Virus record (IMG/VR): IMGVR_UViG_3300042566_001512
Span: 1 to 64,000 of that record
Strand: one strand, 5' to 3'
Length of the DNA: 64,000 nt
Translations under genes and position numbers: made by a program
Notes under the pieces: model-generated
The model's input: the letters and a program-made list of their open reading frames with translations, nothing else
What the model was told of the DNA's origin: nothing
Database searches by the model: none
In this document: piece by piece, positions 2,572 to 44,781 of the stretch
How positions within the stretch are numbered: position 1 is the stretch's first letter
Layout of the letters: each line of letters begins with the position of its first letter

Positions 2572-2949
2572 TTACTTTATTAGAAGATCTATGTATGCTT
2601 TTATGACCTGTTTTTTCTGAGACTCTTTACTCGCCCAGGGGTGAAGAAACGAAGTTATCTTCAGTTCCCCTTTTAGTTTTTCTTTTATATCTTTTGGTGT
2701 ATCTTCGGTGCATACGCAAAACACGTGGTAGACAGATAGCTTTTTGTTTCTGGACCACTTGCTAATGTATATACAATCGTACACTGTTTCATGGCAATAA
2801 ATTTTTATTTCAAAGCCTTGATTAGTGACTATGGTGTACCCGTCATTTGGGGACTGGTGAGATTTTCCCAGTTTAAAATATCTATCGCCTTTGCTTTCTT
2901 CCCACCAGTCAAGTATTCTGTAAATTACGTTTTTTAGTCCATCCAGCAT
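2572..2949 (-). CDS. Hypothetical protein
   Basis: 125-aa ORF, GAGGG RBS upstream, ends at the hairpin. Confidence 0.7.
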   Translation of the reverse strand: MLDGLKNVIYRILDWWEESKGDRYFKLGKSHQSPNDGYTIVTNQGFEIKIYCHETVYDCIYISKWSRNKKLSVYHVFCVCTEDTPKDIKEKLKGELKITSFLHPWASKESQKKQVIKAYIDLLIK

Positions 2950-2969
2950 AAGACTAGCCCTCTATTCGT

Positions 2970-4202
2970 TTATCGGTTAGAGTAGTGCTGCATAGTGAAC
3001 GTACGGAGTATCACGTATAGCATAAAACCTGTTCTAGTTGCTGCAATTGAAGACGGATCTTTTATCTTAGTCGCAGTCTTTACAAGGTGTTCTGAAGCTT
3101 CTCTTATCTTAATTAACATCTCGTCGCTAGAACGAGAACTCATGTATATTCCTCGAATTTTACTTAGCAGGCCAGTCAAATCGCCTTTATTAGCCAAGGC
3201 GGATTTGTTTCCTGTTAAATACTCGAACACGTGCTCCATTATTAGTTCTACCGTTTTCTCTACCTGGTTGTCGGACAGGTGTCTGTAGTTAATGCTGCTC
3301 CATTCCAGAACCTTTACTAGATTAGACGGTGACATTGTGGGCATGACGCTACACACCACGTCGACTAACTCTTGTCTAATGAATGAATTTTTGTCGGTTA
3401 TAATGGAGTTTATGTATCGCAAGTAGTTACTCATGCTTTTTGATTTATCTTTGAGTATCATCTCACCGTCGGTTTCTACCAGTGAACTACTTCGCATTAT
3501 CTTAACACCGCGCTCCGCCATTTCGTAGTGAACAGAGGCTATGTTCTTTAGCATGTCTCTTATTCGACCCTGTACGTCATTTAGCATCTGCACTACTCGA
3601 GTGTCATTATTCATATTTTTTATTACGTCGCGCCATATAGAATCTTCTGCTATCACGGACTCTGCTCTGGCCCTAAGCGCAGCTCCCCAACTTCCGTGCA
3701 CTTTGAGTGCATATTTGTAGCTAAGAGATGAGTATGTGGCGGCAGCTATCTCGGCATCAGCGGGGTATCTAAAATGCCTAAATAATCTAGAGGTCAGAAA
3801 CTTGTACTGTAAATAAGAGCATATTCTTATTTTTCCCTCTTCTTTTAAATCCTTATCTAAATAGCTACTGTTTTCTATAGCGTGCATTATCCAAATGCAC
3901 GCTATGTTAAATATGTCACTAGATACTATTCGATGAGTTTCTATGGCGGGCAATCTATGCACTCTCTCCTCTAGATCCAAATCGTTCACTTCTAGTATGT
4001 CTATAAATAATTTATTTCTATCGTCGTCAGTAAATCTGACCACTTGAACACCAGTGAGAGCGCCACCAAAGAACTCAACATGCTCTTGTTTTTTATTTAC
4101 AAAACTAGCTTCAAGGTTAACGAGTTTCTTAATAAAATCTCGATTAATTTTTATATGAGCACATTCCTCATCGAAGATTGCCTTAATGGATTTATCTCGC
4201 AT
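2970..4202 (-). CDS. Conserved virion structural protein (phiKZ gp32-like)
   Basis: 410 aa; size and position between terminase and tubulin. Confidence 0.65.
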   Translation of the reverse strand: MRDKSIKAIFDEECAHIKINRDFIKKLVNLEASFVNKKQEHVEFFGGALTGVQVVRFTDDDRNKLFIDILEVNDLDLEERVHRLPAIETHRIVSSDIFNIACIWIMHAIENSSYLDKDLKEEGKIRICSYLQYKFLTSRLFRHFRYPADAEIAAATYSSLSYKYALKVHGSWGAALRARAESVIAEDSIWRDVIKNMNNDTRVVQMLNDVQGRIRDMLKNIASVHYEMAERGVKIMRSSSLVETDGEMILKDKSKSMSNYLRYINSIITDKNSFIRQELVDVVCSVMPTMSPSNLVKVLEWSSINYRHLSDNQVEKTVELIMEHVFEYLTGNKSALANKGDLTGLLSKIRGIYMSSRSSDEMLIKIREASEHLVKTATKIKDPSSIAATRTGFMLYVILRTFTMQHYSNR

Positions 4203-14426: not shown

Positions 14427-16289
14427 ATGGCAATTACCGATACCAACAAAGTCAACGCTCTGCAATCGCAACTGAGCGGCGCTAACATGAATCAACAACC
14501 ACAGCAGCAGTCTTCTGCACCGGCCCCAATGAGCTTCATGAACCTGGGGTACAACTTCGGCCTGACGCGGTCCACCACCGACGAAGCCCTTTCGCGCGCT
14601 CTTGCCGTCTTCAAGGAAGACATCAAGAAGCAATTTGAAGATCGAAAGATCGATCCCTCTTTTGAGATCAGTCTTCTGGCCGTCGATTCCAGCAAGGGCA
14701 CGGGTGTTCGTTTCTCTGGCATCGTGGTAGCCACTACCCACAAGGAAATTCCTCAGTCTGTGGCCATTCATACGGTGCTGGTGGAGGGCTCTTCTGACCC
14801 CATCGTTCCGAAGATCGAATCGGCACGCGGTGTTCAATACGAGGTCATGTTGACTGCCGGCGACACGATCGACCGCACCTACGTCGAGGAAGTTCGACGG
14901 ACGGTGGAAAAGGCCTACCCTGGCTATCGCGTGATCAACGCCGATGCTCAAGTGCTGCATCGCGATTTCAACTACGAAGACAAGAACCAGGTGCGCACAT
15001 TTGTGCAAAACTTCGTTCTTCCCACCACCACCATGCTGGTGACCAGCGCACAGGGCTTCCAAGACCTGAACCTGGGCCGCATTGAACGAGACACCTCTAT
15101 TGGTGTTCAGCGCTCCTTCAACGAAAACCAGATGCTGGACTACTCCGGCCACCCGGTCCGTACAGACATCAAGGTTACGGTGAGTGCGTATACTGGTCAA
15201 AAGGGACAGAGCGGTTCGCTAAATACCCAGGAGCAATCTCGGGTGCTGGCTATCGTGGGTGGTTATATCGACACGGTTTGGTCTGACGAAGCCGTATCCC
15301 CGATGACGAACATGATGATGGGCCCGAAGCCCAAGTTCAGGGCTCGCCTGGTGATGACTGCGCTGGAAAACCAAGCAATGCAGACCATCCCTGCTCAGCT
15401 GTTTGCGCTTTCGGGTTCCATGATCCTTCGGGAAGGTAATAACTGGTTCTCCTACTTCACTCCTCGTCGCCTTGCGGCAGGTGCGCATCGTGTCGATAAG
15501 CGTGACGTCGGCGCTCTCAACATCGAGGGAAATATTTCTAATGACCCGAGCGGCTTTGATAAGCTTTTCGATACAAAGGATTCTGGCTTTGACGGAATGG
15601 CTCTTCAGCGTTACATCACCAGCCTGTTCATCCCCGGTATGTACTTTACTCTTCGTGTCAGCGAAGCTGGAGCAGATACCTGGTACAACAGCGTCTTCAA
15701 AGCGGCGGCAGACGGTAACCCGAGTGCCATTTCCGCCATTCTGGCAGGTGCCAACACTCTGACCAACGGCAACTTCCAGAAGTTCTACACTTCGGGCTCG
15801 TCGCCCGTTCTGAAGAACGAAGATCGTGTTCACATGGGCTACTACGTAGACGCCAACGGTGTTAAGTGCGACATCGCTGACATCGACTACATCGCCATCA
15901 TGAATCTGGTTGGCCGAAACGACCCCAGCGTCGGTGCAGCTTGGTCCAATACTTTCTATGCAACAAACGAACCCCTTAACGTTCGTATGGCCGCACGCTG
16001 GAAGATGATCAATGAAGTTGTCGGCGGTACCGCTGTCCTCACCGGATACGGTCGTCTGGTGACCTTCACCAACGAGTTCATTGAAGCCTTTAGCAAGGCA
16101 GTAGCAGCCACCGGCCTGACCATTCGTCAGATTGGTAACAACGATAGCGCGCTGTTCCAACAGCGCGCTGGCGCGAGCTTCCTGGCTGGCGCTGACGTTG
16201 CACCTGGTCAGACCGGGCTGTTTAACTACGGTTCGGGCATTCCTGCACAGCAGTCTGGTGGTTTTGCGTTTAACCAACGCACCTACTGA
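14427..16289 (+). CDS. chmA: Chimallin, major phage nuclear shell protein
   Basis: 620 aa; strong RBS; GC-rich codon usage suggesting high expression; directly upstream of nvRNAP beta'-N as with phiKZ gp54; GHPVRTD and RVHMGYY motifs. Confidence 0.85.
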   Translation: MAITDTNKVNALQSQLSGANMNQQPQQQSSAPAPMSFMNLGYNFGLTRSTTDEALSRALAVFKEDIKKQFEDRKIDPSFEISLLAVDSSKGTGVRFSGIVVATTHKEIPQSVAIHTVLVEGSSDPIVPKIESARGVQYEVMLTAGDTIDRTYVEEVRRTVEKAYPGYRVINADAQVLHRDFNYEDKNQVRTFVQNFVLPTTTMLVTSAQGFQDLNLGRIERDTSIGVQRSFNENQMLDYSGHPVRTDIKVTVSAYTGQKGQSGSLNTQEQSRVLAIVGGYIDTVWSDEAVSPMTNMMMGPKPKFRARLVMTALENQAMQTIPAQLFALSGSMILREGNNWFSYFTPRRLAAGAHRVDKRDVGALNIEGNISNDPSGFDKLFDTKDSGFDGMALQRYITSLFIPGMYFTLRVSEAGADTWYNSVFKAAADGNPSAISAILAGANTLTNGNFQKFYTSGSSPVLKNEDRVHMGYYVDANGVKCDIADIDYIAIMNLVGRNDPSVGAAWSNTFYATNEPLNVRMAARWKMINEVVGGTAVLTGYGRLVTFTNEFIEAFSKAVAATGLTIRQIGNNDSALFQQRAGASFLAGADVAPGQTGLFNYGSGIPAQQSGGFAFNQRTY

Positions 16290-16407: not shown

Positions 16408-17655
16408 ATGGGTGTACATTTAGAGCACGTGAACTTTGATGACGAGTTCAGTAGGCTAAACTTTAGTCCTATCATTATTAATGACTGCCCAACGGTAACT
16501 TCTCAGCAAAAAGATTTTTTGGACAATCTAATCTATAAACGATTTGAAAGCGATCTGCTTTCAAATGAGCCAAAGTGCGAATGCGGGGAAATGACTGGCA
16601 GATACAGACTAGGTAGCGTTTGTCCAAACTGCCAAACTGCCGTACAAGACGAAATGGAACAGGAGCTTCGGCCGATGGTCTGGATCAGATCTCCTGTTGG
16701 CGTGCAACGTTTAATTAATCCTATAATTTTGTTAAAGCTCGTCAGACATTTTAACAAGAGTAACTTTAGTCTGATCGAGTGGCTAATTAACACCGACTAC
16801 GTATCAAGCGGACAGAAGCCAGCTTATCTTGACCATTTGCTATCTATGGACGTTAAGCGCGGTTATAACAACTTCGTGTCCAAAATTGAAGAATATATAA
16901 ATCTAATATTTGACATCAAGACATTTAAGCCTAAAAAGGGAAGTTACGATCCGCTTTACTATCTGGTGATTAAGGCACTCAAAGAAGGCACCCTACTAAG
17001 TCACCATATCCCTCTTATCAACAGGAGCCTGTTGGTTATTGAGGAGACCAAGGTGGGTAAGTGGGTGGACCCTATAGTGATGGGCGCCATAGATGCAATC
17101 AGGACGGTATCGAGCATAGACGACCCGATTATGGCGTTTACGTCTAGGCAAAAGGAAAACAGAATAGCAAAGTCCTTACTCGCCCTTAGTAACTACTACC
17201 GGGACATGCTGGATGAAGTTCTATCTGGAAAGCCAGGAATGTTTCGCAAACACGTGTTTGGCACGCGTACAAACTTTGCGATGCGAAACGTTATTGCTTC
17301 TCTGACAAAGAATCACAGATACGACGAATTGCATATTCCATGGGGTGCGGCAGTAACCACATTTAAACTGCACCTAATTAATAAATTGCTAAAAAGGGGG
17401 TTTACGTCAAACCAAGCAACCGCTCTGCTAAACCAGTGCGTATATACGTTTGACCCTTTGGTAAAGCAATTATTCGATGAGCTGTTTTCCGAGTCTAGGG
17501 ATGGCGGCTTTGCTTGCATATTTCAACGTAATCCTAGCCTGAGCAGAGGATCTGCGCAACGGATGTGGATAACGAAAGTAAAGACGGATCCTGACGATCC
17601 CACAATTTTGTTGAGTATCCTGTCAACAAAATCGTACAATGCCGATTTTGACGGT
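16408..17655 (+). CDS. Non-virion RNAP beta' N-terminal subunit, exon 1 (phiKZ gp55-like)
   Basis: Zn finger CECG…CPNC, GKPGMFRKHVFG, QRNPSL, ends YNADFDG; spliced product about 490 aa. Confidence 0.9.
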
Positions 17656-39180: not shown

Positions 39181-39702
39181 ATGAGTACGATATTCGTGAG
39201 TAGCGGAATTTCTATTACGAAAAATATTCTTCTCGGTTGGTGTATTCTTGCTGAGTTTGATGTGGGCGGTTATGCTTATACTCAGTGGGTACCCATAGAT
39301 ACACTTGATTCTTTTGACCTAGATGGAACTTTAAGAAAAATAGCAGGGGATCCTTTGATTCCTATTGATTTTTATTCTGAATTGTCAAAGCTAGCTAATA
39401 TCCGCAAAGATGATCGCAATAAAGCAAACGAGACTGAGAAAGTTTTAAACGATTTAAATGTGAAAGAATCAGAAAACGCCATTACAGCCACAAACAGGGA
39501 CTCTGACAGGATACATTTACTTAAAGACATTTTGCAGAAAATGTTAGTGGTGAACAATGTTGCGGTATCTGATTTGGGTTATGCTAAGGTAAATCGGCAA
39601 AATGGAGGCAACTGGGTGCTAACCAAAGGGCAAGAATCTACCTGTGAATCGTTTAGTTCGTTGGACGACACACTTGAACATTTGCTAAAAAGGTACTATT
39701 AA
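39181..39702 (+). CDS. Hypothetical protein
   Basis: 173 aa, TAAAGGA RBS. Confidence 0.7.
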   Translation: MSTIFVSSGISITKNILLGWCILAEFDVGGYAYTQWVPIDTLDSFDLDGTLRKIAGDPLIPIDFYSELSKLANIRKDDRNKANETEKVLNDLNVKESENAITATNRDSDRIHLLKDILQKMLVVNNVAVSDLGYAKVNRQNGGNWVLTKGQESTCESFSSLDDTLEHLLKRYY

Positions 39703-39749
39703 AAAGTAATAAATAAATATATTTATTAAAGATAAAAAAGGAGTAATAC

Positions 39750-39932
39750 TTGAATAAAAGCACTAAATTATTGCTAGTGGGCGTTTTCTTAATTGTTCTA
39801 TTTTCATTCTTCTTAAGAGGGGTCTCTGAGAAAGAAACTGAGAAAATCATCAACGCCTGGAAACTGGAATTGTTAAAAATGGCAGAGCAAGATAGGGAGT
39901 CTCTTTTTAAAGCGGGAGCTTTTACTAAGTGA
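39750..39932 (+). CDS. Small membrane protein
   Basis: AAGGAG RBS, TTG start, N-terminal TM helix. Confidence 0.65.
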   Translation: MNKSTKLLLVGVFLIVLFSFFLRGVSEKETEKIINAWKLELLKMAEQDRESLFKAGAFTK

Positions 39933-39935
39933 CGT

Positions 39936-39971
39936 CATAATGCCCTCTGGAATCATCCAGAGGGCATTATG
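39936..39971. terminator. Hairpin between convergent genes, CATA…TATG family
   Basis: cataatgccctctgga/tccagagggcattatg. Confidence 0.8.
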
Positions 39972-39972
39972 C

Positions 39973-40467
39973 TTATCTTTGAGCTTTTTGAATTTCTTCT
40001 ATTGCTTTTATATCCGAATTAACCTTTGCGGTTAATCTCTTTTGACTATCTTTTAAAATGTAGTCGCATATTACACGAGGATATTGTAAAAACTCTTGTA
40101 AGTTTATACCGTAAAACTCCTTAACATTAGAATCGGCAAAAGCTTTTATAGTGTCAAAAGTTTTACTATATATAAAAGTGTCCTCTCCATTCTGATAGGC
40201 AACGGAGGATAAGGGGCGCACATCGTCTAAGCTAGATGGGTTTGCATCCAGGCTGGCTTGCTTTAGGTAGTCAAATACACCAGAAGACTGCTCATAGGAC
40301 TGAACTAGGAGCTGTTTAACCCCTATGTATGTATCTTTTTTTGCAGTTCTGAGTATCTGAACCAGTAATTCGTTTTGATTTGCTCTAGTACAGAAATCGT
40401 GATCTGTTACATGAGCAACTATCGTTGCTCTATCCGACGAATCTTCTGTACGGCTAATATAAAAAAA
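39973..40467 (-). CDS. -1 frameshift extension (gpT-like) of the 40419..41894 gene
   Basis: 164 sense codons open from the T7 run; no ATG/GTG/TTG in the first 82 codons; FYGINLQEFLQYP motif. Confidence 0.7.
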   Translation of the reverse strand, partial: FFYISRTEDSSDRATIVAHVTDHDFCTRANQNELLVQILRTAKKDTYIGVKQLLVQSYEQSSGVFDYLKQASLDANPSSLDDVRPLSSVAYQNGEDTFIYSKTFDTIKAFADSNVKEFYGINLQEFLQYPRVICDYILKDSQKRLTAKVNSDIKAIEEIQKAQR

Positions 40468-41894
40468 TTAGACATTACCTCGATTGGGATTAGTCCTTGC
40501 ATGTGATGATTTTCTCTTAGCTCTCTTTGCTCTTTTCCGCAGGAGGGGCATTTATAAGTAGGTATTGCAATGAGCGATACCGTAGAATCATCGATGAATT
40601 CTTTTATTTTTGTTTGAAAAGTCGTTCGAAGCTGATCATCTGCGGATACGTCTCCGACCACGTTTTCAATTTCTTCTCTTTCCGAATATTCGGTGTCTAA
40701 GTAGTTTATTGATTTTACGAAATGCGCATATTGCCTCATCACGGTAGCCTTAGCCTGCTTAATGAGATATTCGTCTCGTTCCTTCTCGTCCTGTATTAGA
40801 ACTTTAGGATAAGTCTCTTCTATTTCAGAAATCCACCTATAACCGGAATCTATGTGTTCTTGCGCAGTATCTATGGCTATAGTAAAGCTCAAATCTTCGC
40901 TTAGCTTAATAGCCCTGGGATGACCATTTAAGAATTCGTCCTTATAGATGCTCAACGATTCCACCGAGACGCTTGCCTTGTCGCGTTTTGCCATGTGTGC
41001 GATTTGTCTTGCCGTAAGACGTGTCTTGTCAACAAAAAGCAACTTAGATGGATCTAAAAGCTCCGTTACCACATGGCTGCACCTCTCGGGATCACTGGTA
41101 CATGCTCTTTGGTATTGAACCCCGTTTGGCCAAATGGCGCAAACCATCCCCCAAAAAAGGGTTGGCATATCCAGTACATTCATATATTTTTTTATGCTGT
41201 CCCCGTCTGGCAAAATAAGACTAGTGCTCAATATGTGATCTTCGCAGAAGTTCAACATTGCTGCAGAAGAAAAAGAGGTATTGTTGGAGAAGATTAAACC
41301 ATAGGTTGCTCTTCCTAGGCTAACCTTCTCCTCGGTCAAGGCCCTGTACAGCTCCAAAATAGCAGACTCTGAAGGGGCTTTAAATCTAACCCAGAATCCA
41401 GAATGCCACAACGGAACATTAAATGTACCGCCCAGATCAAGGGACTGCCTGATCATCAGGCGAAGGTTTTCACCAGTGAGTTTTTGATTTGGGCCCACCT
41501 TGGCTTTTGCCATCCCTAGGAAAAGAGGCCCTACCGAGGAATCTATCTTCTGTTGAAAATGTGCATCTGCTCTACTTACTGTTGGTACAAAAGCACTGCC
41601 ATAGGCCACAGATTCCATAGACCCCTGCAAAACAGACAGCCAGTGGGAATTAAAGTCAGATACTTTATTGCCCACTTTTGTAACCCGGTCTCTAACAGAA
41701 TCGGACAGATCCGACGGAAGCACGATATTTTCTTTTTCAAAATCTATGCCGTCCTGTAGAGGTTTGCTATATTCTCCATCCAACGTGAAATTAGCAGGAA
41801 GTGGAGTTACTACTTTCGGTTGTTCGGAATCAAACTTTTCAGAATCGTTTTTTGGTTCTGGAATTTCTGGTAAAAAGTCTTCTACGATTGACAT
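40419..41894 (-). CDS. Conserved protein (phiKZ gp77-like); putative baseplate-hub/tail assembly chaperone with CPSCG Zn finger
   Basis: VPLWHSGFW, C-x6-C, CPSCG; ends in the slippery NFF sequence. Confidence 0.7.
   Translation of the reverse strand: MSIVEDFLPEIPEPKNDSEKFDSEQPKVVTPLPANFTLDGEYSKPLQDGIDFEKENIVLPSDLSDSVRDRVTKVGNKVSDFNSHWLSVLQGSMESVAYGSAFVPTVSRADAHFQQKIDSSVGPLFLGMAKAKVGPNQKLTGENLRLMIRQSLDLGGTFNVPLWHSGFWVRFKAPSESAILELYRALTEEKVSLGRATYGLIFSNNTSFSSAAMLNFCEDHILSTSLILPDGDSIKKYMNVLDMPTLFWGMVCAIWPNGVQYQRACTSDPERCSHVVTELLDPSKLLFVDKTRLTARQIAHMAKRDKASVSVESLSIYKDEFLNGHPRAIKLSEDLSFTIAIDTAQEHIDSGYRWISEIEETYPKVLIQDEKERDEYLIKQAKATVMRQYAHFVKSINYLDTEYSEREEIENVVGDVSADDQLRTTFQTKIKEFIDDSTVSLIAIPTYKCPSCGKEQRELRENHHMQGLIPIEVMSNFFILAVQKIRRIEQR
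40461..40467 (-). promoter_or_regulatory. Slippery heptamer T TTT TTT (-1 programmed frameshift site)
   Basis: In-frame AAT TTT TTT ATA; GAGGT SD-like sequence 9 nt upstream. Confidence 0.65.
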
Positions 41895-41898
41895 TTGA

Positions 41899-42435
41899 TT
41901 ATTCTCCTTTAATCACTGCGTCTGATATAACGTTGACGTCGGTAATATCGTTTTGTTTATTTTGAATGAGGGCGGCCATGGCTTCTTGCGCAGGAGCAAT
42001 CTGTTCCAATATGTGGCAAATTACAGGAACGATATTGGCATCGTATATTTCCACGATTTCCTGATATCTACCATTAATCTGAATAACCTCAAGACCTTCT
42101 TCTGGGCTGGAAATCCCCCCAGTTTTGTCTTTGTGATTTTCATGGACGGCGTTAAGTCGCTGCACGTGCTCCATGATGTCTTTATTCAAAAGACTTACGT
42201 TATCTGCCAGTTTTTGTGGATCGTTAATTAGTACGGCAAGTTCTGGCGTGTCCACGATTACTGCCAACTGAGCAGCAAGCTGCCCTTCTACGTTGTGTAT
42301 GGCCTGGGTGGCTACTTCGTAGTGTTTATTGCAGTCATCCCAAAAACCGTTATTTTTTAACGATTTTTTATTTTGTATTGCATCAATTACGCGCTGGTGA
42401 CCTTTGCTGGGTCCTTTGATTTTGTGAGAGCTCAT
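41899..42435 (-). CDS. Hypothetical helical protein
   Basis: 178 aa, AAAGGA RBS. Confidence 0.7.
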   Translation of the reverse strand: MSSHKIKGPSKGHQRVIDAIQNKKSLKNNGFWDDCNKHYEVATQAIHNVEGQLAAQLAVIVDTPELAVLINDPQKLADNVSLLNKDIMEHVQRLNAVHENHKDKTGGISSPEEGLEVIQINGRYQEIVEIYDANIVPVICHILEQIAPAQEAMAALIQNKQNDITDVNVISDAVIKGE

Positions 42436-42599: not shown

Positions 42600-43493
42600 A
42601 TGATTTATGAAGAGCTTAGGAACCTGATATCTCTAACACGCGCAGATAACACGGTAGATACTTTTGATTCAGCAATACGGCTATTTGAAACCATGGGTCA
42701 GGATGACTACATGGATATTTTTTCAGCAACTATTAACTCTTCACCAAACCTAACAGAAGAAGAATTAATACTAGAATTAATAAATGACTTAACTTTGTTA
42801 ATCAACAACATATTCTCTATACAGGGCGTTGTTCTGGCAGAGGAAGTAATTCTTAGTGACAAGGTAAAATTGGCCAAGGGACTTATTGACATCTTTGACT
42901 ACTCAGACCGTCCGACCTTGGTAAGAATAGTAGAGACAGACCTTAACCCAGAAGAACAGCTTTCTGAGCTACTGGGCCTGGTTACAGAATACAACGTCGA
43001 AACTATTTTTTCTTTTATTCAGGAAGTAAATCCGGGATTACCGCAAAGACTGAAAGATACAATTTTAGAAGAAGCAATAGACCAGATTTACTCCGAGGTA
43101 ATGAAATCAATAATAACTCTATATTTATCTTTTAAAGAAAAACTGATGGAAAACCGTCCGTTTTACACAGATAAACACGTGTCTGAAATAAGCACAATAG
43201 GTAGACAATATTCGTTTTATCTTGATGATCTGCTTAAGAACAAAGACTTCGTTGACCTGTTATCTAAATTAGATAATGTTGGTAAAATAGGCGGCGATGA
43301 TATTTTTGAGGAAGTTAGTAAATACCTAATAGGAATAGCGTGCCTGTCAGAAGACGGATTTACTAATATACTTGAAGTCATCAGGTCTAATATGGATAAG
43401 ATAACCAGCAACATGACCACCAATTCTAAGCTGCAAACTTATATATCTAAATATCTAATTAAACTAACTAGCACAGGAGCGGTTAATGAATAA
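42600..43493 (+). CDS. Conserved hypothetical protein (phiKZ gp79-like)
   Basis: 297 aa, acidic; precedes the vRNAP subunit. Confidence 0.6.
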   Translation: MIYEELRNLISLTRADNTVDTFDSAIRLFETMGQDDYMDIFSATINSSPNLTEEELILELINDLTLLINNIFSIQGVVLAEEVILSDKVKLAKGLIDIFDYSDRPTLVRIVETDLNPEEQLSELLGLVTEYNVETIFSFIQEVNPGLPQRLKDTILEEAIDQIYSEVMKSIITLYLSFKEKLMENRPFYTDKHVSEISTIGRQYSFYLDDLLKNKDFVDLLSKLDNVGKIGGDDIFEEVSKYLIGIACLSEDGFTNILEVIRSNMDKITSNMTTNSKLQTYISKYLIKLTSTGAVNE

Positions 43494-44781
43494 AAGAGAT
43501 CTATTCATAAAGGCAATGAAAAATGGCCTTTATAAAAAACTAGAATGGGTAATATCCGCTTTCTCTATTTCACAAGACACGGATTCGGCTTTTGCTTATA
43601 AAATAAAAACTGACCCTACGGGACATTATTACTTAAATCCTGATAATTTAAAAGAATACATTAAAATAGAGGATGGTTTACCGGGCCAACCTCTGTACAA
43701 AGCTAAAGATACACTTACGATCTCAAACGAAGACATAGTAAATCTAAATGAAGAGCTGGTAACGACTTACGGGAATCTTCTAGCTAACTATGTTTTACTG
43801 GTATATCCGTTTGGAAAGAAAATACCTTACATTAATAAGAAAATAGAACTTGGAAGCATAGAGAAATTCATTCTCCCTATATTTAAAAGTAATCCACCAA
43901 ACGGGGCAGAAAGAGACCCCAAATACATTTACGTTGACGAATATATAGCTTTAGGAAATGCTGTTATATATTGCTGCAGCTTTTCGCAGCTATTTACTTG
44001 GGGCCTCACTGAGAAAATAGTAATACCCCCAGACTGGGTGAAGAAAGAAAAGGCTAAGCTGCTTGAGCAGTATAAGGATCGACTAAACGAGGCCGCCGTG
44101 GTGGCCATTATAGATTCTGAGCTTGTAAAAAAATATAAAGAATATATAAAAGACGACCCCGGGGCAAATTTTCTCATAAGCTCAAAGTCTACCAATACGG
44201 TAGCAAAAAAGAAGTACTTGATGGTGGGTGGCGAAATGGGTCTAAACGAAGACACAGTAAACGTCGATCTTATTCAAAATTCTCTAGCAGAGGGCTGGGA
44301 CCTTGATAAATTTCCAGTAATGTTAAATACCTTAAGAGCCGGCTCATATAACCGAGGGGCGCAAACGGTTTTAGGCGGCGTTGCAGTTAAGGGTCTACTC
44401 AGAGCCTCGGCTAACCTAAACGTAACCGAGGATGACTGTGGCTCCAATCTAGGTATGGTTGCAGACATAGAGCAGTCAAATCTAGAAAAATTTGTAGGCC
44501 TTAGTGTTATTACAAAAGAAGGCAGTCTGTTAATGCGGACAAAAGAGGATGTCGGCGAATACATGGGTAAGCGTATATTGGTTAGATCGCCGATGTATTG
44601 TAAACTGGATAAAACAGATTACTGTAAAGTATGTCTGGGTGAACGCTTAGCAAATAACCCCGAAGGTTTAAGTATTGCGGTCTCGGAATACGGCAGCACG
44701 TTTCTAGGAATATTTATGTCTGCTGCGCACTCAAAATCTTTACAACTAGCAAGAATGAATTGGAAAACGGCAATAAAGTGA
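43486..44781 (+). CDS. Virion RNAP beta' middle subunit (phiKZ gp80-like)
   Basis: SLAEGW, RAGSYNRGAQT, EDDCGS, VRSPMYC…YCKVCLG, FMSAAH. Confidence 0.85.
   Translation: MNKRDLFIKAMKNGLYKKLEWVISAFSISQDTDSAFAYKIKTDPTGHYYLNPDNLKEYIKIEDGLPGQPLYKAKDTLTISNEDIVNLNEELVTTYGNLLANYVLLVYPFGKKIPYINKKIELGSIEKFILPIFKSNPPNGAERDPKYIYVDEYIALGNAVIYCCSFSQLFTWGLTEKIVIPPDWVKKEKAKLLEQYKDRLNEAAVVAIIDSELVKKYKEYIKDDPGANFLISSKSTNTVAKKKYLMVGGEMGLNEDTVNVDLIQNSLAEGWDLDKFPVMLNTLRAGSYNRGAQTVLGGVAVKGLLRASANLNVTEDDCGSNLGMVADIEQSNLEKFVGLSVITKEGSLLMRTKEDVGEYMGKRILVRSPMYCKLDKTDYCKVCLGERLANNPEGLSIAVSEYGSTFLGIFMSAAHSKSLQLARMNWKTAIK

Follow-up and report, generated by a model that had tools for sequence, protein, structure and literature searches.

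A conserved candidate for a hidden -1 frameshift near the end of a jumbo-phage gene

Does a run of seven T's near the 3' end of a 491-codon gene of a phiKZ-like jumbo phage mark a place where one gene is read in two frames, or is it simply the coding of two adjacent phenylalanines followed by an unrelated or poorly annotated ORF? The question arose from a preliminary description of a 64,000-nucleotide stretch of DNA (positions 1 to 64,000 of the IMG/VR record IMGVR_UViG_3300042566_001512, here called the window), which proposed that a hidden programmed -1 frameshift yields products of 491 aa and about 640 aa that act as tail or baseplate assembly chaperones of the G/GT type in a nucleus-forming jumbo phage. 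Our analysis indicates that the gene, a remote relative of the T4 baseplate-hub assembly chaperone gp26, very probably makes a short and a long protein by a -1 slip in reading frame, although there is no direct evidence (peptide, western blot or ribosome profile) for the fused protein in any phage, and literature searches found none. The assignment of the phage to the phiKZ-like nucleus-forming (Chimalliviridae-like) group was borne out by a homologue of gp54 (chimallin; E 8e-17), a gp55-like gene (E 2e-67), an RNA polymerase beta subunit gene and a gene order, gp80-gp79 / gp78-gp77, that matches phiKZ. The coordinates of these and the other features considered are collected in Table 1.

Table 1. 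Features of the window that bear on the proposed frameshift
Position	Strand	Feature	Remarks
40419..41894	-	0-frame gene, 491 aa	Orthologue of phiKZ gp77 / 201phi2-1 gp136 (phrog_4585); remote T4 gp26-like baseplate-hub assembly chaperone; C-terminal CPxCG zinc ribbon followed by an FFxL tail; TAG stop at 40421-40419
40461..40467	-	Slippery run T TTT TTT, register X XXY YYZ (codons AAT TTT TTT ATA)	At the conserved Phe-Phe codons (F477, F478), 14 codons before the stop; proposed -1 shift site
39973..40461	-	-1 frame extension, 162 codons plus TAA (39975-39973)	Disordered linker of about 17 aa, then an all-alpha domain of about 145 aa (phrog_12109); no ATG/GTG/TTG for 80 codons
40468..40470		TAA of the -1 frame directly before the run	-1 frame open from 40467 (164 codons counting FF, 162 from the codon after the slip)
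40221		GTG, first canonical start in the -1 frame	Codon 83 of the open frame
40419..40461	-	Dual-coding overlap between the shift site and the 0-frame stop
40390..40413	-	HVxxPxFG-type motif of the extension (here HVTDHDFC)	Begins right after the 0-frame stop; upstream of any start codon
40477..40481	-	SD-like GAGGT, 9 nt upstream of the run	Possible local enhancer only
40388..40451	-	Predicted local stem-loop starting 9 nt after the run	-23.8 kcal/mol, z about -3.8; contains the 7-bp hairpin
40413..40430		7-bp hairpin GAGCAAC/GTTGCTC	TAG in its loop and 3' arm
39936..39971	.	16-bp hairpin directly after the stop of the -1 ORF, between convergent genes	Likely terminator of the gp78-gp77 unit
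41899..42435	-	gp78-like gene, 178 aa	Ends 5 nt before the ATG of the 491-aa gene; same operon
14577..16124		gp54 homologue
16408..17652		gp55-like gene
43486..44781		RNA polymerase beta subunit gene

The observation itself held in every particular: the gene, the in-frame heptamer, the stop codon immediately before it in the -1 frame, the long start-less frame that follows, the SD-like element and the 7-bp hairpin were all found as stated, and the predicted products are 491 aa and 478+162 = 640 aa. The window comes from a metagenome assembly, and a T8 in place of T7 would give exactly the fused frame as a single 640-aa gene; a homopolymer error had been named in advance as something that would overturn the proposal. 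The probable source run has one contig over 39700-42200 with 0 differences, and a contig from an independent freshwater metagenome of another study covers 40071-42200 with 5 substitutions and no indel, so that the T7 is real (X3 and X4, two others consulted, do not cover the run). Decay of a recently frameshifted pseudogene is likewise disfavored, because all 75 other loci examined, including finished isolate genomes such as phiKZ, need the same -1 shift and because the 0-frame tail after the run is itself conserved (L480 in at least 90% of sequences). We regard artefact or decay as effectively refuted.

A megablast search of the region against phage records found no close relative, but homologous loci were numerous, and their layout provided the comparison that had been proposed beforehand as a test, namely whether relatives keep the T-run and an open -1 frame at the Phe-Phe codons or encode these residues as TTC TTC. 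All 76 loci examined (phiKZ gp77, 201phi2-1 gp136, and Ralstonia, Erwinia, Klebsiella, Xanthomonas and Bacillus jumbo phages, ranging from 25 to 59% GC) have a T5-T8 run at these codons, with the downstream ORF in the -1 frame. For the first 63 loci, which fall into 32 clusters at 50% identity, the run lies 13-21 codons before the stop (39 codons in one group), and the -1 frame between the run and the 0-frame stop contains 0 stops in 1,025 codons, as compared to 2,323 of 26,648 (8.7%) in the gene body and 53 of 978 for the +1 frame of the overlap. With one representative for each cluster, the probability of a stop-free overlap is about 1e-27. Only 2 other runs of T>=6 occur in 79.9 kb of gene bodies, and the site keeps TTT even in loci above 50% GC, where phenylalanine is encoded by TTT 54 times and by TTC 302 times. 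A canonical in-frame heptamer is present in 53 of the 63 loci (T TTT TTT in 40, T TTT TTC in 12 and T TTT TTG in 1), whereas the other ten have only a U_UUY tetramer. The 13 loci added later, which include a Bacillus phage and 8 close relatives of the window phage, all show the same layout.

The start-less stretch evolves like coding sequence. Its substitutions fall 17/9/41 on codon positions 1/2/3 of the -1 frame, and synonymous codon identity is 0.73 in the overlap as compared to 0.43 elsewhere, the highest of 451 intervals compared. The likely terminator hairpin follows the -1 ORF rather than the 0-frame stop, so that the transcript covers the whole extension.

An ordinary, separate downstream gene, initiated at a non-canonical codon or by termination-reinitiation after the 0-frame stop, would leave the T-run as no more than the coding of a conserved Phe-Phe, and an initiation site of its own for this ORF had been named at the outset as evidence against a frameshift. 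There are some indications in favor of such a gene: databases treat the domain as a separate small protein family (phrog_12109; 1,775 clusters), phages RP12/RP31 have an ATG and 201phi2-1 a TTG near the 0-frame stop, where independent initiation may coexist with the shift, and the window has an ATA two codons before the conserved motif. However, the HVxxPxFG motif lies upstream of any ATG/GTG/TTG in 57 of 62 loci, about half of which also lack CTG/ATT/ATC/ATA there, and in three groups the motif lies inside the overlap, upstream of the 0-frame stop. No alignment column holds a conserved start, and the starts chosen by gene callers for 122 database representatives scatter over profile positions 1-60. 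Nor does this explanation predict the stop-free -1 frame back to the T-run, the constant -1 phase (63 of 63) or the TTT TTT in GC-rich genomes. We consider it very unlikely. A natural in-frame fusion of the two parts was not found among the 150 best small-domain representatives or 120 gp77-like proteins, the one 671-aa protein among them being longer at its N-terminus.

The proposed stimulators fared less well than the site. The GAGGT element (-7.3 kcal/mol, rank 0.06) is present in 8 of 9 members of the window's own clade but not across the family, where the median rank is 0.56, and the 7-bp hairpin is not kept even in the closest relatives. The local stem-loop that contains this hairpin is strong in the window, but the family-wide mean z is -0.37, z ranges from -2.7 to +1.9 within the window's clade, and the consensus fold has no covariation support; a search of Rfam found nothing relevant. 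A conserved downstream RNA structure and a family-wide SD-like element are therefore rejected, neither element is shown to be a stimulator, and the strong signals in the window set against their lack of conservation across the family leave it undecided whether the site has a stimulatory element at all. It also counts against the proposed shift that U_UUU_UUU and U_UUU_UUA are much weaker shifters in E. coli than A_AAA_AAG (PMC5009743).

The absence of a conserved ribosomal stimulator, together with a conserved element that is a pure homopolymer (T7-T8 in 49 of 63 loci), raises the possibility of transcriptional slippage, in which RNA polymerase, possibly the phage's own multisubunit enzyme, would add one extra U at the run in a fraction of the transcripts, so that standard translation yields the same 640-aa fusion. 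Runs of UUUUUUU are avoided in E. coli genes, partly because of transcriptional slippage (PMC4066793), and these phages bring their own RNA polymerases, which could explain conservation across hosts from Bacillus to Pseudomonas. Programmed slippage by bacterial RNA polymerase typically takes a homopolymer of 8-9 nt or more. The runs observed are T5 in 5 loci, T6 in 9, T7 in 40 and T8 in 9, so that 14 of 63 would be short for productive slippage and none exceeds 8, although longer runs would slip better; the behavior of phage RNA polymerases on such runs is not known, and the lengths alone do not decide the matter. In all 63 loci an in-frame U_UUY is kept, as ribosomal slippage requires, although conservation of the FF residues confounds this observation. 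RNA-seq runs for phiKZ-type infection were located, but an extra base in RNA was not looked for in them, and transcriptional slippage, while not excluded, seems unlikely to us. Equally unlikely, but also not ruled out, is a bolder form of it, in which the T-run is a programmed transcriptional recoding signal that the phage carries with its non-canonical polymerase into any host; this would be the first recoding signal tied to these polymerases, and would imply that other homopolymer runs in jumbo-phage genes may be read in two frames.

What might the two proteins do? An AF2 model of the 491-aa protein (pLDDT 86, pTM 0.86) matched, in a Foldseek search of BFVD, models named baseplate hub subunit, hub assembly protein or chaperone at E 2.4e-5 to 1e-3 (probability 1.0, target-normalised TM 0.42-0.54), and clusters carrying PF12322 (T4_baseplate) appeared among the Atlas feature hits (rank 15, score 0.93) and structure neighbours. 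The C-terminal CPxCG zinc ribbon and FFxLL tail are shared with T4 gp26, which ends in CPECGKTHAHVIRGLKEFFELL (FFELL being the last residues): hhalign gave a local match at the ribbon (E 0.0017), and BLASTP of the tails gave 41% over 39 aa (E 2e-5). T4 gp26 is listed as a hub assembly chaperone (PMC3004832). The relationship is nevertheless remote, since a Pfam search found no hit for either part of the window gene, only 2 of 53 relatives matched PF12322, at best E = 0.0077 and below the curated threshold, and PDB sequence profiles and PDB fold searches gave no match for either part, so that no solved virion structure contains them. Profile comparison of the extension domain with T4 gp25, gp26, gp28 and gp51 gave nothing. 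The alignments used for structure prediction contained no rows from GenBank-record loci, and the 640-aa protein was not searched or folded as one chain. A requirement for hub assembly was not assayed, and absence from the finished virion has only indirect support, in that the phiKZ and 201phi2-1 records flag the neighbours, but not gp77/gp136 or the downstream ORF, as MS-detected virion proteins.

Our preferred explanation, which we hold with fair confidence, is that most ribosomes translate the 0 frame and stop at the TAG, whereas at U UUU UUU a fraction slip back one base, because both tRNA-Phe can re-pair perfectly, and read 162 further codons. The last 13 residues would thus be replaced by a flexible linker and the all-alpha domain, which has no initiation codon of its own and in this view can be made only in this way, and the arrangement would be ancestral to phiKZ-like jumbo phages, including phiKZ gp77. 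The sequence comparisons directly establish the site and its register, the open -1 frame, the lack of starts, coding-type selection on the start-less stretch and conservation in all of the loci examined, whereas we infer that the shift is ribosomal rather than transcriptional, that its efficiency is probably low (by analogy with lambda G/GT, since it was not measured here) and that the two forms cooperate in hub or tail assembly as lambda G and GT do. We are highly confident that a trans-frame fusion is made, think it more likely than not that the shift is ribosomal, and consider a role as hub-assembly chaperone about as likely as not. The interpretation in the preliminary description is thus supported in its core, a recoding site that fuses a start-less ORF to a gp77-like gene, and its suggestion of a relationship to T4 gp26/gp51 is borne out for gp26, but its stimulators, its G/GT label (an analogy only) and the choice between ribosomal and transcriptional slippage are weaker.

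Full-text literature searches found no description of a frameshift in phiKZ gp77 or in Chimalliviridae (the "gp77" hits refer to the numbering of other phages), and in each of the 12 GenBank records inspected the ~500 nt after gp77 is annotated as empty or as a truncated small ORF, although phiKZ-like nucleus-forming phages are a major model system and candidates for phage therapy. If the shift is real, hundreds of genomes need a joined CDS, and the family of ~145-aa domains is a C-terminal extension rather than a free-standing protein. The strategy of a chaperone and its frameshift-extended form, already known from lambda G/GT, would then exist in an unrelated, gp26-like protein family, which would be an independent origin of the same strategy and would offer a handle on the poorly understood role of T4 gp26-type hub assembly factors, as well as a natural U7 shift site that works without an obvious stimulator across very different hosts.

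The closest known system is the lambda gpG/gpGT pair and the conserved -1 frameshift of tail assembly chaperone genes (Xu, Hendrix & Duda 2004; reviewed in PMC5009743), in which, as proposed here, a -1 shift near the 3' end of a tail-morphogenesis chaperone gene adds a second C-terminal domain that has no start codon of its own, to give two products in a fixed ratio from one gene. The lambda-type site works without an obligatory strong stimulator, and none is conserved across the family here. As far as the record notes for phiKZ and 201phi2-1 go, the products resemble the lambda pair also in not being flagged as virion components. The proteins are unrelated, however: no Phage_TAC Pfam hit was obtained, Foldseek hits named tail assembly or pre-tape-measure chaperone appeared only at E 1.0-2.5, and the Atlas TAC cluster appeared only at rank 90, score 0.83. 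The upstream part is 480-600 aa rather than about 140, the slippery site is U UUU UUU rather than G GGA AAG, and the binding partners are unknown. Nor does the locus lie between tail tube and tape measure genes; its neighbours are gp78-like, gp79-like and RNA polymerase beta subunit genes and, across a terminator, small unknown ORFs, as in phiKZ.

T4 gene 26 also makes two products, but gp26 is 208 aa, less than half the length of the jumbo-phage proteins, and ends 3 codons after an FF coded TTC TTT with no slippery run; its second product, 26', is an in-frame internal-initiation fragment (a separate CDS in the T4 record) rather than a trans-frame extension, and the next gene, 25, has its own ATG. 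E. coli dnaX (gamma/tau), from which the model of an SD element plus hairpin is drawn, likewise has a -1 shift on a homopolymeric heptamer inside a gene, but at A AAA AAG, where the shift leads almost at once to a stop and shortens the protein, and it depends on an upstream SD and a downstream hairpin of the kind not conserved here. In the orfA-orfB transposase fusions of the IS3/IS911 type, the downstream ORF similarly sits in the -1 frame without an initiation codon and is expressed only as a fusion through a heptamer near the end of the upstream ORF, but these are mobile-element transposases, usually with A AAA AAG and defined stimulators, and have no relation to the phage gene in protein or biology.

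Reading of the minus strand and of the ORF table bore out every statement about the sequence made in the preliminary description, so that the observation itself holds. The 491-aa gene ends ...GAG GTA ATG TCT AAT TTT TTT ATA ... CGA TAG, the -1 frame is closed immediately before the run of seven T's and open after it, and a slip at the run would give a product of 478 + 162 = 640 aa. The positions of these and the other features discussed here are collected in the table.

Positions of the features discussed in the window and in related phage loci
Sequence	Positions	Strand	Feature
Window	41894-40419	minus	491-aa gene
Window	40467-40461	minus	Run of seven T's, in the register T TTT TTT
Window	40470-40468	minus	TAA of the -1 frame, immediately preceding the run
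Window	39975-39973	minus	TAA that ends the open -1 frame
Window	40221	minus	GTG, the first ATG/GTG/TTG of the -1 frame, 80 codons after the run
Window	40481-40477	minus	GAGGT, 9 nt upstream of the run
Window	40430-40413	minus	7-bp hairpin GAGCAAC/GTTGCTC, with the TAG in its loop and 3' arm
Window	39936-39971		Perfect 16-bp hairpin with a 4-nt loop, one base after the stop of the -1 ORF, between convergent genes; probably a bidirectional terminator
Window	41853-41847	minus	Second in-frame heptamer, A AAA AAC, at codons 14-16 of the 491-aa gene
Window	41899-42435	minus	gp78-like gene
Window	42600-43493	plus	gp79-like gene
Window	43486-44781	plus	Virion RNA polymerase beta subunit gene (phrog_2962, E 2e-127)
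Window	14577-16124	plus	Homologue of the phiKZ gp54 nuclear shell protein chimallin (22% identity over 558 aa, E 8e-17)
Window	16408-17652	plus	gp55-like non-virion RNA polymerase beta subunit (30%, E 2e-67)
L059 (Klebsiella/Serratia jumbo phage group)	3877-3995		0 frame continuing 39 codons past the T-run
L070 (Bacillus phage vB_BspM_AgentSmith)	2642-2648		T TTT TTA site
L069 (phage T4)	7803-8429	minus	Gene 26
L075 (close relative of the window phage)	2949-3450		Extension, without any called gene
L076 (close relative of the window phage)	2955-3463		Extension, without any called gene

A homopolymer error had been named beforehand as an outcome that would dispose of the proposal, and the run proved not to be an assembly error. 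The window is part of IMG/VR contig 3300042566_001512 (208.8 kb), and four metagenome runs hold the stretch. The probable source run has one contig over 39700-42200 with no difference, whereas an independent freshwater sample from another study has a contig over 40071-42200 with five substitutions and no insertion or deletion. From the reading frame we worked out by hand that two of these substitutions fall in the -1 ORF, of which one is synonymous (CTG to CTA) and one is conservative (Val to Leu). The other two runs do not cover the T-run, but near-identical sequence to 39700-42200 occurs in independent freshwater, wastewater and faeces metagenomes (shares 0.91, 0.34, 0.35), so the lineage is widespread.

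A tblastn search finds the 491-aa protein in 225 jumbo-phage records, all below 60% identity, and the -1 product matches the DNA immediately downstream of those genes. The orthologue in phiKZ is gp77 and that in 201phi2-1 is gp136. In phiKZ the codons are ACT TTT TTT ACT and the -1 frame is open for 171 codons, of which the annotated PHIKZ076.4 (80 aa) represents only the C-terminal half, with 219 nt left unannotated. We collected 63 loci and later added 5 diverged isolates, including the Bacillus phage AgentSmith, and 8 close relatives of the window phage. Conservation of the run and of the open -1 frame had likewise been set as a test, and every one of the 76 loci has a T5-T8 run at the homologous Phe-Phe (once Phe-Leu) codons and a -1 frame open from the run for 150-209 codons, with one locus running off its contig while still open. 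The AgentSmith locus, from a jumbo phage of a Gram-positive host, has a 171-codon -1 frame, and its gene is annotated "putative baseplate hub assembly protein". In one group of Klebsiella/Serratia jumbo phages (loci L058-L060) the overlap of the two frames amounts to 37 codons and reaches into the conserved domain of the extension, making this the longest dual-coding stretch in the family.

This conservation is more than might be expected by chance. Among the 63 loci, the -1 frame carries 2,323 stops in 26,648 codons of gene body (8.7%), but 0 in the 1,025 codons between the run and the 0-frame stop, where the +1 frame, taken as a control, has 53 in 978. With one representative for each of 32 clusters at 50% identity, the chance of a stop-free overlap is about 1e-27, and the chance that all downstream ORFs share one phase is 3^-32. 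In 22 of the 63 loci, the window among them, a -1 stop lies within 13 nt upstream of the run, and the open frame therefore begins at the run. In loci above 50% GC, Phe is coded TTC 302 times and TTT 54 times, yet the site keeps TTT. Only two other runs of T6 or longer occur in 79.9 kb of these genes, and UUUUUUU is generally avoided in E. coli genes (PMC4066793). Of the 63 sites, 53 are canonical in-frame heptamers and the other ten keep an in-frame U_UUY. The second heptamer of the window gene, near its 5' end, differs in that the -1 frame there stops after two codons, so that a slip would only abort translation; its conservation was not checked.

The possibility that the downstream ORF has an initiation site of its own, also specified in advance as a way in which the proposal might fail, finds little support, and the downstream part is very unlikely to be a free-standing gene. 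The -1 products align over their whole length, and a conserved motif, HVxxPxFG, lies 15-32 residues after the run. Only 5 of 62 distinct loci have any ATG/GTG/TTG between the run and the motif, about half also lack near-cognate codons there, and in three groups the motif lies inside the overlap, upstream of the 0-frame stop. A profile search of 1.84 billion representatives finds 1,775 clusters of this domain; among the best 150, all are called as small proteins of 97-182 aa, but their called starts scatter over profile positions 1-60, and 63 of 122 start after the motif. In two close relatives of the window phage (L075 and L076) the public gene calls leave the whole extension, about 500 nt, without any gene. 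Between close pairs, substitutions in the start-less stretch fall 17/9/41 on codon positions 1/2/3, which indicates that it is translated. In the window's own clade of nine genomes, synonymous codon identity is 0.73 in the 15-codon overlap against 0.43 elsewhere, the highest of 451 windows, as expected for two functional frames. The 16-bp hairpin, moreover, follows the -1 ORF and not the 0-frame stop.

The simplest reading of the mechanism is tandem slippage of two tRNA-Phe on U UUU UUU/C, which in this view needs no further element. The interpretation offered in the preliminary description, a hidden -1 recoding site, is strongly supported by the comparative evidence but still lacks protein-level proof, and the stimulators that it proposed do not hold up as general features. 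Downstream folding is not conserved across the family (mean z -0.37), nor even within the window's clade, and the upstream anti-SD pairing is average (median rank 0.56). Locally, GAGGT is kept in 8 of 9 clade members, although GAG and GAA are used about equally (161:182), and the window also has a stable stem starting 9 nt after the run; both may tune efficiency in this lineage. U_UUU_UUU is a weak shifter in E. coli compared with A_AAA_AAG (PMC5009743), which would fit a low ratio like that of lambda G:GT (30:1). Transcriptional slippage would give the same protein and is not excluded: the pure homopolymer and the phage-encoded polymerases speak for it, whereas the T5/T6 runs in 14 loci and the absence of runs longer than 8 speak against it. 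RNA-seq runs of phiKZ-type infections exist, but reads were compared at the DNA level only.

AlphaFold models of both parts are confident, with pLDDT 86 and pTM 0.86 for the 491-aa part, and pLDDT 81 for the extension, which is predicted to be all-alpha with a long terminal helix and a disordered first 17 residues. Neither part matches any solved structure. Against predicted viral structures, the large part hits its own family first and then T4-like "baseplate hub subunit / hub assembly protein / chaperone" models at E 2e-5 to 1e-3. Its Atlas neighbours carry PF12322, although Pfam itself stays below threshold. The C-terminal tails correspond, in that both have a CPxCG zinc ribbon, with 41% identity over 39 aa. 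T4 gp26 ends ...EFFELL, the same FFxLL as here, but in T4 the FF is coded TTC TTT, there is no slippery run, and a stop follows three codons later; gene 25 follows in the -1 phase with its own ATG (TAATG overlap). T4 gp26 is listed as a hub assembly chaperone (PMC3004832), and the T4 record also annotates a second CDS, 26', within gene 26 that shares its stop. The extension domain matches none of T4 gp25, gp26, gp28 or gp51, and its partner is unknown.

The window phage itself is phiKZ-like, with a chimallin homologue and split RNA polymerase genes. The chimallin homologue is followed by the gp55-like gene in the same order as in phiKZ, so that the "nucleus-forming" label given in the preliminary description is reasonable, and the gp79-like, virion RNA polymerase beta subunit and gp78-like genes are arranged divergently, exactly as phiKZ gp80-gp79 / gp78-gp77. 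Full-text literature searches found no report of this frameshift, and none of the 12 GenBank records that we opened for this gene joins the two ORFs.

By analogy, the arrangement works like lambda G/GT, as a -1 extension of a morphogenesis chaperone by a start-less domain, and the strategy is in that respect already known. It is not, however, a member of that family, since there is no sequence or fold relation, the upstream protein is much larger, and the locus sits beside RNA polymerase subunit genes rather than between tube and tape-measure genes. What would be new, if the shift is real, is such an extension on a protein that is instead a remote member of the gp26 lineage.
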